Positions 724 through 51,353 of a stretch of 64,000 bases of DNA are shown here, in pieces. The notes under the pieces are model-generated. The model worked only from the letters and a program-made list of their open reading frames with translations. It was not told where the DNA came from and did no database searches. Position 1 is the stretch's first letter; each line of letters begins with the position of its first letter. The stretch is taken from the IMG/VR virus record IMGVR_UViG_3300035181_000357, positions 146,612-210,611 of that record. The stretch is one strand, 5' to 3'. The translations under genes and the position numbers were made by a program.

Positions 724-1395
724 ATGAAGATTGGATATGTGGCTAGTAGAAAAGGAGAGATATCCCTGTTCTTAGACATGGGTGGTTCTCCTTATATCCA
801 GGTGTCTCTCGATCCATCTATTCCTCAGATCCCCGGAGTAAGTATCAGGGTCCAGGTTAAGGATGACTCAGAGTTTCTAGTAATATCAAAAATGGCAGTA
901 ACCACTCTTTTAGAGGAAGTAACTGCATTTCTAGTTGGTCAGAACGTATCTATGGATGTGGTAAAAGAATTTAGTGCTAATGCATTAAAGGCCCTAGATA
1001 AGAATTTTGAGGAAAAAGATGCAAAACCTATACCTGAGAGCGCAGTTCTTCTTAATAAAATATTGGAATCTGAATCCTCTAAATTATTTGAGATAGAATT
1101 TGATCTTCCTGAAGCTTTCTTTGACGATGTTTACAAGAATGTAGTCACAGCGTCAGGGACTGAATATCGTAGAACGGATCGAGCCAAGCCCTATAAGCGA
1201 GAGCATGGTATAAAGATGGAAGATATCCCAGATAGTATAGATCCTAAGAAGGTTATAAAGAAGTATCGAAATAATATTTATAAGCACACACCATCTAAGA
1301 ACTATATCCTAACTTATGATATAAATGGTCGTCCAACAGGGATGGTTGAAGCACCCAAATCTCCTATGAGATTTAAATCTAAACTACTGAAATAA
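724..1395 (+). CDS. Hypothetical late protein ending in RFKSKLLK
   Basis: 223-aa ORF with AGAGG SD and upstream TATTAATAGAG motif. Confidence 0.7.
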   Translation: MKIGYVASRKGEISLFLDMGGSPYIQVSLDPSIPQIPGVSIRVQVKDDSEFLVISKMAVTTLLEEVTAFLVGQNVSMDVVKEFSANALKALDKNFEEKDAKPIPESAVLLNKILESESSKLFEIEFDLPEAFFDDVYKNVVTASGTEYRRTDRAKPYKREHGIKMEDIPDSIDPKKVIKKYRNNIYKHTPSKNYILTYDINGRPTGMVEAPKSPMRFKSKLLK

Positions 1396-1404
1396 AGGAT
1401 TGAT

Positions 1405-1965
1405 ATGAAAGAGAACATGACAATAGAACTCCATGGCCACATTAAGATCTTTCATAAGAACGATCCATCTGTCGTACTCTTCGACGACCATAATACGATC
1501 GTCGTTGGTGTCAAGAGTTTGTTCTCTAGATTAATGGCAGATAGCCTTGAACCCGCCTATGGGATATGGGGATTAGCTATTGGATCAGGTAACAGTGCAT
1601 GGGGAGATAATCCTGGTGCTGCTACCGGAACGGAATGGCAGTTAGAGAATGAGACGAAGCGTAAGAGACGCCTCGTTACTAGATTCTTGGACACGAATAT
1701 GAATCCTGTAGTAGGATTCACAGATACAGTAGAAGTTCAGACACTATATAACGCTACTGATGATGGGATTACCACTCCTATTAGAGAGATGGGATTGATT
1801 GGTGGTGGCTCTACCTCTGGGGCAACAAATATGTTAACAGCCCCATATTGGGATCCATCCACAAAGTTAGCTAACTCTGTTACGTTGATCAACTATAAGA
1901 AGCTACCAACCTTTAATATGCCTTCTGGTATTGATTTGGTCTTCTCCTGGATAATTCAATTCTAA
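1405..1965 (+). CDS. Tail-collar/baseplate-type structural protein
   Basis: N-x-I-V ... AIGSG ... LENE ... IREMGL ... NYK ... W-x-I-x-F pattern typical of phage tail-collar fibre-like proteins. Confidence 0.55.
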   Translation: MKENMTIELHGHIKIFHKNDPSVVLFDDHNTIVVGVKSLFSRLMADSLEPAYGIWGLAIGSGNSAWGDNPGAATGTEWQLENETKRKRRLVTRFLDTNMNPVVGFTDTVEVQTLYNATDDGITTPIREMGLIGGGSTSGATNMLTAPYWDPSTKLANSVTLINYKKLPTFNMPSGIDLVFSWIIQF

Positions 1966-2071
1966 GAACAGTTACTTCCTAGATCTAAGTGAATCCTCTT
2001 ATCGAGTATAATATGAGTATCGAAATAAGACCCTAGAAATATTACACTTTTGTATATTTCTAGGAGAGATT

Positions 2072-2497
2072 ATGAAGAAGCAAGATGAAGTTTTTCGTCA
2101 AGTTCAAACAGAAATTTCTAGTATGTTAAAGAGAGATGGTGTCCTCGATAAAACACCCTACGTTGTACTAGAAATCATAGATAGACTTAAGACGGTAACA
2201 GATTGGGAAGATCGAGATCGAACCAAGACTATAGCCAAGTCTATCAGAGAAATAGTAGAGATATGTATTAAAAATCCCAAGGCGAAGCCACCATCCAAAC
2301 CTGTGGCACTTAAATCTATATACGAGGATGCTGAATCGTTCGGAGATGAATTCGATGTTCATCCAGAATTAGAAGTAGATTGGGATAGATCCAAGTCTGT
2401 GGAGAAATACTCTAATACAGAACTCGGGTCTGCGAAGAAGAATCTCATCAGATCAGCTCGAAGAGAAGAGAAGAAGAAATTAAGAAAAGCTGGTTAA
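2072..2497 (+). CDS. Hypothetical protein
   Basis: 141-aa ORF; GGAGA SD overlaps a long hairpin (2032-2064). Confidence 0.65.
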   Translation: MKKQDEVFRQVQTEISSMLKRDGVLDKTPYVVLEIIDRLKTVTDWEDRDRTKTIAKSIREIVEICIKNPKAKPPSKPVALKSIYEDAESFGDEFDVHPELEVDWDRSKSVEKYSNTELGSAKKNLIRSARREEKKKLRKAG

Positions 2498-49500: not shown

Positions 49501-49605
49501 ATGGCTGTTCCAATCAAGCGAAAGAGCAACAAGAAGACCAAGTTAGGAAAGAAAGGTCCTCGTACTCCAGGAAAGAAAGTAAAACTAAGACGTAAGGGTC
49601 ACTAA
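49501..49605 (+). CDS. 34-aa very basic peptide
   Basis: MAVPIKRKSNKKTKLGKKGPRTPGKKVKLRRKGH; GAGG SD and TATTATAGAG upstream. Confidence 0.6.
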   Translation: MAVPIKRKSNKKTKLGKKGPRTPGKKVKLRRKGH

Positions 49606-49606
49606 A

Positions 49607-50407
49607 ATGAATCTAAAGGAACTAGAGAATCTGGCAAGGGCTGGAGAATCCATCGCGGATTGGTTCCGTGGTGAATTTATGTCTAGTAGGAAAGAACCTG
49701 TAAAATTCCTTAAAGATATCCAGACTATAAATCTCCCCAAATATGGAGCTGGTACCTTATACAGATGGACATGGCTTAAAAAGAAAGACATGCAAGCTGT
49801 TAAGAGTGCTAAGAAGATATCAATTAAATCTGGAAAGCGTGGAACCCAGTCTTGGACTGATTCTATCGCATCTGCCATAGAGTTCTATGAAGAGATAGGG
49901 CGAGCTCCCAGATGGAAAGAAGAGAGGACATGGGAGCATGGTATTGTTGAAGCTGTTATCCCTGGTAACAAAATCCTGTGCTTTGAGCATGATCTCTTAG
50001 AACTGTATAATACTGCATACAAAGAAGTTATAGCTTTAAAGGCCAAGGATCTAAAGGGAAAAGAAACTGTCCTCCGATATCATGGTATACCACAAGATGA
50101 CTTCAAAGAATACCTATCTAATCAGATATCTGATTGTAAACATGTCCTCGAAGAATATATTAATCAACGAGAATGGGTTGTAAAATTGGACAACGCTCTC
50201 GTACAGGCAGTAGATATTCATGTCAAAGGATGGACTTCAGTGAAATCAAGTGCTGAGACTCCTGACCATGTAATCATTGTGATCGATGATCCAGATACTG
50301 GAGAATCTCATGTAGAGTTTCCAGATTCAAACGTAGTACCATTTAACCGAGAAGAACCTTTACAGCAAGCTGCCAGCTTTACATCTAAGTTACTTAAAAA
50401 GGATTAA
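49607..50407 (+). CDS. Hypothetical late protein ending FTSKLLKKD
   Basis: 266-aa ORF in a coupled operon. Confidence 0.75.
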   Translation: MNLKELENLARAGESIADWFRGEFMSSRKEPVKFLKDIQTINLPKYGAGTLYRWTWLKKKDMQAVKSAKKISIKSGKRGTQSWTDSIASAIEFYEEIGRAPRWKEERTWEHGIVEAVIPGNKILCFEHDLLELYNTAYKEVIALKAKDLKGKETVLRYHGIPQDDFKEYLSNQISDCKHVLEEYINQREWVVKLDNALVQAVDIHVKGWTSVKSSAETPDHVIIVIDDPDTGESHVEFPDSNVVPFNREEPLQQAASFTSKLLKKD

Positions 50408-50408
50408 C

Positions 50409-51353
50409 ATGAGAATTAATATTACCGCTGATATGCATTCCCTGGTCCAAAAAATGAAGAAGGAAGGATCCATTACAAAACAATATGTGATGAAGATGCC
50501 TAATGTGACCAGGACTTTGAAAGCGCTGTTGAAGCATGGATTTGTCGAGGGTATCGGATCGGATCATAGGACATTTGAATTGACAGATATGGGGAAGCAG
50601 CTAGCCGAATTGACTCCTAGATTTTCTGGATATGGATTCACTAATGAAGGTCATCCATCTGATTCATGGACCGTCATCGTTGAGAACGGTACCGTGTCTA
50701 ATCCAAAAAACCCAAAGAAAGAACTAAGAAAAGATTTCAGAAAGACATTCCCTGTTACCGATACTAGAACTCTCGAAGAGACTCAGAATGAGAAAGAGGG
50801 GAAATTTGGTTCGAAGCTGTTGAATGTAATAGATAATCGAGAACTAGGAAAGTCCGGGATCTATCGTATTGATAAAGCCTATAAGCCTAAAGTAGATGAT
50901 AACATCGATTACTATGATCGTGTAGGAGACAAGCGATATGGGACTATCCTAGAGATAACGGACAAGGGTATGTCAGTACAAGACTCACAGTCAAAGAAGG
51001 TCGTTAAGCTAAAATTCGGAGCATTCAAGAAAGCTAATGGATTCGAGAACATTCTAGGACAGGTGAAAGATTTTGCTGAGAGCCTTGTAACTGGTGGGAC
51101 ACTCATTACATATGAAAAATTTAAAGAATCTAGTAATCTAGATCCGCGTTCATATGTAAAGATGTGGGTACTAAGAGATGTGTTGATCACTTCTGCAGGT
51201 AACGCACTACCTTACTATGGTGGTTTCGAATATGTAGGTAAAGAACACAAGACAACTGTAGGTGATTACGTTATCTATTCTAACGAGGACAGTCGCGTTA
51301 ATGAACTGATCAACAATCTCCTAGGTAATGTAGGAGATGAAGATGAGGACTAA
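50409..51353 (+). CDS. Hypothetical protein (internal FGSKLL)
   Basis: 314 aa; winged-helix-like N-terminus. Confidence 0.75.
   Translation: MRINITADMHSLVQKMKKEGSITKQYVMKMPNVTRTLKALLKHGFVEGIGSDHRTFELTDMGKQLAELTPRFSGYGFTNEGHPSDSWTVIVENGTVSNPKNPKKELRKDFRKTFPVTDTRTLEETQNEKEGKFGSKLLNVIDNRELGKSGIYRIDKAYKPKVDDNIDYYDRVGDKRYGTILEITDKGMSVQDSQSKKVVKLKFGAFKKANGFENILGQVKDFAESLVTGGTLITYEKFKESSNLDPRSYVKMWVLRDVLITSAGNALPYYGGFEYVGKEHKTTVGDYVIYSNEDSRVNELINNLLGNVGDEDED

Follow-up and report, generated by a model that had tools for sequence, protein, structure and literature searches.

To our knowledge, little is known about how phages choose the proteins that are loaded into the head and injected, beyond T4 and, to a lesser extent, P1 and phiKZ-like phages. 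The head proteases of T4, HK97 and herpesviruses cut the head protein, the scaffold, themselves and internal proteins at one shared motif. In T4, the capsid-targeting sequence (CTS) is formed by the first 10 residues of IPIII, and Alt, a head-packaged ADP-ribosyltransferase (ART), is processed at both termini by gp21 (PMC9026906). For polyvalent proteins, packaging in the capsid and entry into the host together with the DNA have been predicted (PMC5512222). Here we describe a short terminal peptide, F-x-[SA]-x-L-L-K (the tag), carried by proteins encoded in a 64,000-nucleotide stretch of viral DNA (the window: bases 146,612–210,611 of the 210,611-bp metagenomic virus contig IMGVR_UViG_3300035181_000357; positions are those of the window unless marked genome). 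The nearest cultured relative of this contig, and the only isolate of its lineage, is the 309-kb Tunturiibacter (Acidobacteriota) phage Tunturi_5 (PMC11924767). We propose, with a probability of about one half, that the tag is a CTS-like label for head loading and processing, read by the HK97-type head protease, the scaffold or both; that it has some role in head assembly appears probable from the sequences.

Distribution of the tag and the proteins that carry it

When the strict motif F-x-[SA]-x-L-L-K was searched in the six-frame translation of the whole contig, exactly six matches were found, all of them within four residues of a protein end. Three directly followed the initiator Met (genes 12678, 13492 and 39693), and three lay 0–4 residues before the stop codon (724–1395, 49607–50407 and a 72-aa open reading frame (ORF) outside the window). 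The carriers, with a DNA element that precedes some of them, are the following.

704–723, + strand: DNA element TTAATAGAGG, before carrier 1; a similar sequence, TATGTAGAG, lies at about 12660–12670 and at about 39675–39685
724–1395, + strand: carrier 1, 223 aa, downstream of baseplate genes; C-terminal tag FKSKLLK-stop at 1372–1392 (end ..RFKSKLLK-stop)
12678–13499, + strand: carrier 2, 273 aa; N-terminal tag MFKSQLLK, then TAAPP, at 12678–12716 (peptide MFKSQLLKTAAPP)
13492–14373, + strand: carrier 3, 293 aa, paralog of carrier 2; MFRSSLLK, then SAAPP, at 13492–13530 (peptide MFRSSLLKSAAPP)
39693–40049, + strand: carrier 4, 118-aa acidic protein; MFKAKLLK, then TASSP, at 39693–39731 (peptide MFKAKLLKTASSP)
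49607–50407, + strand: carrier 5, 266-aa ART-like protein; tail ..QAASFTSKLLKKD-stop, tag at 50378–50398 (..FTSKLLKKD-stop)
genome 102598–102816, − strand (outside the window): 72-aa ORF with the sixth strict copy, ending ..FISKLLKKESK-stop

Shuffling of the residues within each predicted protein gave an expectation of 0.12 strict matches, and none of 300 shuffles reached six. Only 3.6% of positions lie four residues or less from an end, and the chance of the observed placement is 0.036^5 = 6e-8 if the paralog pair is counted once, i.e. for five independent proteins. The initial annotation would have given up the motif had it been no more frequent than chance; the three N-terminal and two C-terminal peptides that it listed are all present, though its coordinates were those of ORF starts, and the true starts of two of the genes are the ATGs at 12678 and 13492. 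It had also called the carriers unrelated. This does not hold for carriers 2 and 3, which are paralogs (42–43% identity), but in the others the tag is the sole shared sequence; carrier 4, for instance, has only residues 1–15 in common with carrier 2. Carrier 3 starts 8 nt before the end of carrier 2. Its public gene calls differ, one giving 293 aa from the upstream start and another 279 aa from a later start; the upstream start is backed by the first 13 residues, which are conserved in both paralogs. None of the five window carriers taken alone had a significant Pfam or PHROG match. The products of 39693 and 102598 are both small acidic proteins.

The codons of the copies vary synonymously (TTT/TTC, TCT/TCC/TCA/GCT, CTA/TTA/CTC and AAA/AAG), so that the peptide, and not a DNA element, is conserved. 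Conservation is found at positions 1, 3, 5, (6) and 7 of the tag, and AAPP or SP linkers come after the N-terminal copies. Since the conserved positions fall on every second residue and a flexible linker is present, the tag may bind as an extended strand in a groove.

With a looser pattern, [SAGT]-x-L-[LMI]-K, eight terminal matches were found against 0.64 expected, again a value that none of 300 shuffles reached. It adds two C-terminal cases, both outside the window and in the head/tail module:

676-aa protein, encoded where Tunturi_5 has its 'DNA ejection protein': C-terminus SPITQLLK-stop
734-aa protein: C-terminus ..KSKLIKSRR-stop, i.e. ..FNRKSKLIKSRR-stop

The 734-aa protein contains a 2H phosphoesterase domain (E 1e-9) and matches LPD1 and Acb1 weakly; with its 2H domain and weak LPD1 match, it is the sole protein here that approaches a polyvalent architecture. 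An HU-like protein (genome 18029–18352, − strand) starts with MTELLKTE and also fits the loose pattern; it has an HU family match and was counted as a false positive, this start being presumably the native N-terminus of the HU family. Three internal cases proposed by the initial annotation, FASKLLQA (221/283), FGSKLLN (133/314) and RSRLMKRRA (528/815), are present in the proteins, but they fail the strict motif and fit the background. The first lies in a 283-aa protein (2494–3345, − strand) with a weak HipA-like kinase match, whose homolog in a 256-kb relative has 489 aa; FASKLL(Q) is kept there as FASRLLNKQ, within a generally conserved region.

The sequence TA[AT][TG]TAGAG stands 4–7 nt ahead of the start in carriers 724, 12678 and 39693. 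The earlier statement that most carriers sit behind TATTATAGAG is thus correct for these three and not for the remaining ones. At 4–12 nt before a start codon, TA[AT][TG]TAGAG(G) is found in only five genes genome-wide, three of which are carriers (hypergeometric p ~1e-4); the further sites are at about 48560–48570 and at about genome 113105. The looser TA..TAGAG is not gene-associated, 3 of its 45 matches being upstream of genes. The element may be a GAGG ribosome site joined to a promoter-like TAT.TA.

Conservation in relatives and resemblance to the head protein

We compared the carriers with proteins of two genomes designated G1 (221 kb) and G2 (313 kb), of the closest IMG/VR relative (G6), of the 256-kb relative, contig SRR22746123_95049, and of Tunturi_5. 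When the paralog, polymerase and 39693 proteins were used as queries, no close relative was found in IMG/VR, and the exact DNA pattern of the N-terminal tags had no further match there.

The tag is kept across four protein families, in relatives at 39–69% identity. In the 724 family, all four relatives (44–69% identity) end with [FY]KSKLL[KR]-stop, and the C-terminal 45 residues are the best-conserved part. The domain also forms the C-terminal third of Tunturi_5 gp224, a GNAT-GNAT fusion, whose tail reads WGSRLIQARAS-stop (..PADWGSRLIQARAS-stop). Relatives of the paralog family, found with exhaustive HMMER searches, start with MSFKAKLLTAAPPS, MEHKYKSKLLTAVP, MKQKLNSKLLNRYLTAAP and MKSDLLTAAPAP; their N-termini include MSFKAKLLTAAPP, ..YKSKLLTAVP, ..LNSKLLN..TAAP and MKSDLLTAAP, and two of the tagged relatives form a syntenic pair in the 256-kb genome. 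Tails of the 49607 family are AASFKSKLLKSS followed by 40 residues, FESKLLRELHYPGER-stop and AASFKSRLLQ-stop, in the forms AASFKSKLLK.., FESKLLR.. and AASFKSRLLQ-stop, with AASFKS[KR]LL[KQ] being kept. The G6 homolog of the 676-aa protein ends with SPVSDLIK-stop instead of SPITQLLK-stop. The G6 2H protein has an additional C-terminal domain of about 160 aa, and KQSRLLKKRA lies internally where this domain joins. Because of this junction copy and of the ART-like relative with 40 residues beyond the tag, the tag marks module boundaries as well as protein ends, as a processing site would. A 128-aa G6 protein that ends with IASLLK-stop is an uncertain case, its homolog in the window (19896–20312) having a different end.

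The head module lies at genome 62–72 kb. It encodes a major head protein (genome 63990–64901), a scaffold-like protein that is very acidic (genome 65626–66876) and a head maturation protease (genome 66950–67858). The major head protein (PHROG 2522, E 6e-47; weak Pfam Phage_capsid match) is of the HK97 fold and is 37% identical to Bacillus phage G gp27. It starts with MRTLSRTQQQMAQLGLLLKSPGGRQKL, its residues 11–22 read ..AQLGLLLKSPGG.., and the likeness to the tag is at residues 13–22. At the same place, 29 IMG/VR relatives and Tunturi_5 (head protein gp334) have ..LGQ[IL]LK[TS]AAGRQKL.., as ILKTAAG in 20 and LLKSAAG in three, with the variants LLHTAAG, LLHTANG, LLRNTGG and LLQTATG. This segment of the relatives matches the QLLK[TS]AA of the N-terminal tags. 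In the proteome, LLK[ST][AP] is found at only four places, of which three are tags and one is in the head protein; 0.5 would be expected.

Related stretches were found in the two other head-module proteins. The scaffold-like protein has [FY]KLASSLL, kept in all relatives examined. The protease (PHROG 18299, E 3.5e-14) is HK97-type, and we take its YMSMGC and EASWVETPAFPGA to be HK97-like motifs. Its N-terminal part has a stretch resembling K-[ST]-A-A, and its KAAS is invariant, with [SQT]LILP after it in many relatives; the ..AAS-FKSKLLK tails of the ART-like proteins are comparable to this KAAS stretch.

The carriers look like virion-delivered effectors, as judged from their sequence affinities. 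The AlphaFold2 model of the 49607 protein has a predicted local distance difference test score (pLDDT) of 79.5, with a disordered tail (241–266, pLDDT <50). Its top Foldseek matches in the PDB are ART toxins, first Vis (probability 0.96, but weak: E 5.7e-3, TM ~0.3), then pertussis S1 and CARDS, and its structural neighbours in the ESM Atlas are ART clusters (TM 0.40–0.44). The segments LYRW, QSWTD and Q[RK]EW are conserved in this protein and five relatives (six sequences) and fit the R / S-x-T / Q-x-E triad of ARTs. We consider the protein ART-like, not a proven ADP-ribosyltransferase. The distant homologs of the paralog domain, found in an exhaustive HMMER search of 1.8 billion proteins and significant at the scale of that whole library (E 7.5e-5 to 2e-4), adjoin Pfam ART-PolyVal, a hallmark of polyvalent proteins. 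In G1 the 724-type domain makes up the N-terminal module of a 691-aa protein, and in G2 it starts a 2191-aa protein that also comprises a poly(A)-polymerase-type nucleotidyltransferase (NTase), ART-PolyVal and DUF7178. Neither a MuF nor an ART-PolyVal domain is present in the contig. The model of the 724 protein (pLDDT 56.7) was too poor for a fold search, and the look-up with the Atlas model of the paralog (pLDDT 0.33) was uninformative.

A proposed head-loading label and its alternatives

The evidence described above would be accounted for if phi-x-(S/A)-x-L-L-(K) were a short tethered address and processing label for head assembly, copying the ..L-G-x-L-L-K↓S/T-A-A.. segment (↓, presumed cut) that lies close to the start of this phage's major head protein. 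Tag and head-protein segment would then have a common reader within the prohead during assembly. This reader would most likely be the head maturation protease of HK97 type, the most economical candidate, through its substrate groove, or possibly the acidic scaffold; the present evidence does not tell the two apart. Proteins tagged at either end would co-assemble into the prohead. The N-terminal tags (MFKSQLLK↓TAAPP) would act as CTS-like propeptides that are cut after L-L-K once loaded, while the C-terminal ..L-L-K-COOH tags would bind in the manner of product ends, or would have a short extension removed. HK97 gp5 is cut at K↓S, which LLK↓S/T would parallel. The cargo, comprising the ART-like enzyme, polyvalent-type modules, the 2H phosphoesterase protein and small acidic proteins, would finally enter the host by ejection together with the DNA. 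That tagged proteins are bound, cleaved, packaged and ejected is in each case inferred. The position-independent head-packaging or cleavage signal for injected proteins, which the initial annotation suggested by analogy with the T4 CTS, gains circumstantial support from the effector-like carriers, the tags in the head/tail module and the head-protein likeness; its description of all carriers as unrelated and as late, and its internal cases, were not supported.

Among described systems, the CTS and propeptides of T4 (IPI–III, Alt and gp21) are similar in that a short terminal peptide is found on unrelated proteins including an ART-type enzyme. T4 propeptides are N- and C-terminal, with Alt having them at both ends (PMC9026906), and the tag is likewise found at either end. 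The cleavage motifs of T4 recur in gp23, gp22 and the internal proteins; the likeness of the tag to part of the major head protein may be a counterpart of this. The carrier set is of the same kind as the T4 internal proteins with the ART Alt. The differences are that the motif is here phi-x-S-x-L-L-K, ending with K, and not L/I-x-E, that the protease is HK97-type (PHROG 18299), and that many tags are encoded as already ending at the presumed cut point; targeting and cleavage are predictions here. No head module of T4 type, with L/I-x-E sites and a protease like gp21, was found, T4 gp21 itself not being among the queries. If the proposal is correct, what would be new with respect to T4-type capsid targeting is the unrelated jumbo lineage, the other motif, the HK97-type protease, the use of either terminus and the mimicry of the head protein.

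With encapsulin cargo-loading peptides, and with the capsid-targeting tail at the C-terminus of the HK97 maturation protease, the tag has in common that a short terminal peptide on a flexible linker would load cargo into an HK97-fold shell. The structure in question is here a tailed-phage head with portal, terminase, scaffold and protease rather than a shell free of portal and protease, and the tag consensus is unrelated to that of encapsulins. We know of no description of mimicry of the shell protein's own N-terminus for encapsulins. In staphylococcal phage 80alpha, N-terminal peptides of the capsid and scaffold proteins are reportedly cut by the host protease Prp, which is also said to trim ribosomal protein L27. 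There too, one protease reads a short N-terminal peptide common to unrelated head proteins, but it is a host protease, the peptide is N-terminal only, its motif is ..F-x-A↓S and no cargo effectors are involved. Polyvalent proteins and MuF-fused effectors contain ART, 2H phosphoesterase, LPD-type and NTase modules and have the same predicted head packaging and delivery (Iyer et al. 2017, PMC5512222). The difference is that we find mostly separate small proteins with their own terminal tag, instead of a giant polypeptide anchored by a MuF or portal domain: the window carriers are single-module proteins of 118–293 aa, not large polypeptides with at least two effector domains. True polyvalent proteins with the 724-type domain do occur in relatives, such as the 2191-aa ART-PolyVal protein of G2.

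More speculatively, and we would rather doubt this extension than rely on it, the tag could be a portable cargo-loading peptide that works at either end by mimicking the N-terminal junction of the head protein. The lineage would then have split the giant polyvalent proteins of its relatives into small effectors, each with a label of 7–13 residues, as a counterpart of encapsulin loading that is read by a protease groove.

Several observations weigh against a head-loading and processing label. Three or four carriers are placed among nucleotide-metabolism and tRNA genes, outside the structural module, and the 'late' character initially ascribed to the carriers is not evident; carrier 4, for one, sits within a tRNA array, between tRNA-Pro and tRNA-Asp. 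Most C-terminal tags stop at K, leaving nothing to cut, and several N-terminal tags of relatives have no K (..KLLTAAPP), which weakens a strict cut after K. The likeness to the head protein was noticed post hoc, and a position-specific scoring matrix built from the tags only does not rank the head-protein site highly, because F is absent and G replaces S. The prime side of this site is SPGG in the contig, not TAAP, and the site is not universal, the aligned segment in Bacillus phage G being ISKALETEEG. No tagged cargo set is obvious in the more distant relatives G1, G2 and Tunturi_5, although they keep the head-protein segment; in Tunturi_5 the strict-motif count equals the control count, and a resembling tail is found in gp224 only. 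The 724-domain junctions of the fused proteins of G1 and G2 show no motif. Finally, we are dealing with an uncultured metagenomic contig, the completeness of which is estimated by CheckV at 69%. A predicted complex of the head protease alignment with residues 1–60 of the paralog family scored 0.07, compared with a mark of 0.32, and is evidence neither way.

The alternative that survives best, though we think it unlikely, is a pure docking peptide that functions without proteolysis, as in encapsulins or the HK97 protease tail, binding to the scaffold or to the inner face of the head protein and staying on the cargo. It would explain why most C-terminal tags end exactly with ..LLK-stop and why K-less variants exist; the scaffold-like protein is very acidic while the tag is basic and hydrophobic, and the proteases of relatives have amphipathic F-x-R-L-L-x-[RK]-stop tails at their C-termini. 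Yet T/S-A-A-P is conserved after the N-terminal tags as it is in the head protein, which suggests a junction more than a plain binding helix or strand, and the motif is also found at internal module boundaries in relatives.

We consider it improbable that the tag binds a hub other than the head, such as a divergent sliding clamp, the volactin-like actin described below or a host factor, e.g. RNA polymerase. Hub-binding peptides such as the beta-clamp and PCNA motifs occur at either terminus, and the tag is superficially similar to the F-D-K-S-K-L-K-K-T of thymosin-beta/WH2. The location of several carriers among replication, nucleotide and tRNA genes would fit this idea, as would the presence of an actin-like gene, of a clamp-loader homolog in the lineage and of an annotated processivity factor in Tunturi_5. 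However, the latter, which itself has no Pfam match, has no detectable homolog in the contig, even by phmmer --max; no clamp homolog was found in the contig, and the ends of the DNA polymerase, primase and helicase are without tag. G1 and G2 keep the actin (56% identity) and yet show no tagged set. A non-head hub would also leave unexplained the likeness to the head-protein N-terminus and the tags in the head/tail module.

A degron or a membrane-targeting amphipathic helix, timing the destruction or setting the location of early effectors, is more improbable still. Both kinds of signal are known at either terminus, the peptide is short, basic and hydrophobic, and the phage encodes its own tmRNA. 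Nevertheless, the strict S/A at position 3 and L-L-K across unrelated proteins, with their every-second-residue pattern, fit a specific groove and not a generic helix; seven residues are short for a membrane anchor, and neither signal has a tie to the head-protein similarity. An origin by chance, by paralogy or from regulatory DNA that is read in frame at the borders of genes is effectively refuted: even though two carriers are paralogs and three share the upstream element, the excess of six copies over 0.12, all of them terminal, the synonymous codons, the retention in four families and the restriction of what the carriers share to the tag all contradict it.

If the head-loading and processing label is real, the injected proteome of an uncultured jumbo-phage lineage would become readable from sequence alone, with the ART-like protein, the 2H phosphoesterase protein and the paralog domain as pointers to new anti-defence effectors. 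It would also provide a compact handle to load foreign proteins into HK97-type capsids, and an evolutionary alternative to polyvalent proteins, in which a single giant polypeptide is replaced by numerous small modules, each with a tag.

Source genome and neighbouring genes

Judged from its genes, the contig is a jumbo myovirus. Genes for a tail sheath, a family-A-type DNA polymerase, topoisomerase II and rIIA were recognised, homologs of terminase, portal and clamp-loader were detected, and 40 tRNAs and a tmRNA are encoded. About 75 genes are common to the contig and Tunturi_5, at 25–67% identity, and the host of the lineage probably belongs to the Acidobacteriota. A T4-like phage was considered and rejected: a tblastn search with twenty T4 replication and early proteins matched only rIIA, gp39 (topoisomerase II) and gp42, and gave no match in the contig for gp43, 45, 44, 62, 41, 55 and others.

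Two genes outside the window were also noted. An actin-like protein is encoded at genome 27122–28228 (− strand; Pfam Volactin PF25216, E 2.3e-45, with a weak FtsA match); this volactin-like actin is found at 56% identity in G1 and G2 and was not found in Tunturi_5. A 1744-aa ORF at genome 33246–38480 (− strand), without Pfam or PHROG match, occupies the place of the annotated processivity factor and methyltransferase of Tunturi_5.

Within the window, a dense array of 40 tRNA genes extends from 36590 to 48034 and includes the tmRNA at 37833–38171 (tag peptide AEPQLALAA). A tRNA with the anticodon CTA (45642–45717), which is named tRNA-Pyl by ARAGORN, is a potential amber suppressor. The TAG stop is still used by 35 of 181 ORFs of at least 100 aa, and a changed genetic code is not indicated. 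Just upstream of the array, an RNA ligase is encoded at 34523–35614 (+ strand; Pfam PHA02142 OB-fold domain and RNA_ligase, E 3e-42). The rIIA homolog (16513–19797, + strand) has 34% identity to T4-type rIIA and is followed by a 371-aa ORF in the position of rIIB. Finally, a free-standing 415-aa protein (53664–54911, − strand) shares 36% identity with the NTase domain of poly(A)-polymerase/CCA-adding type that is fused within the 2191-aa protein of G2.

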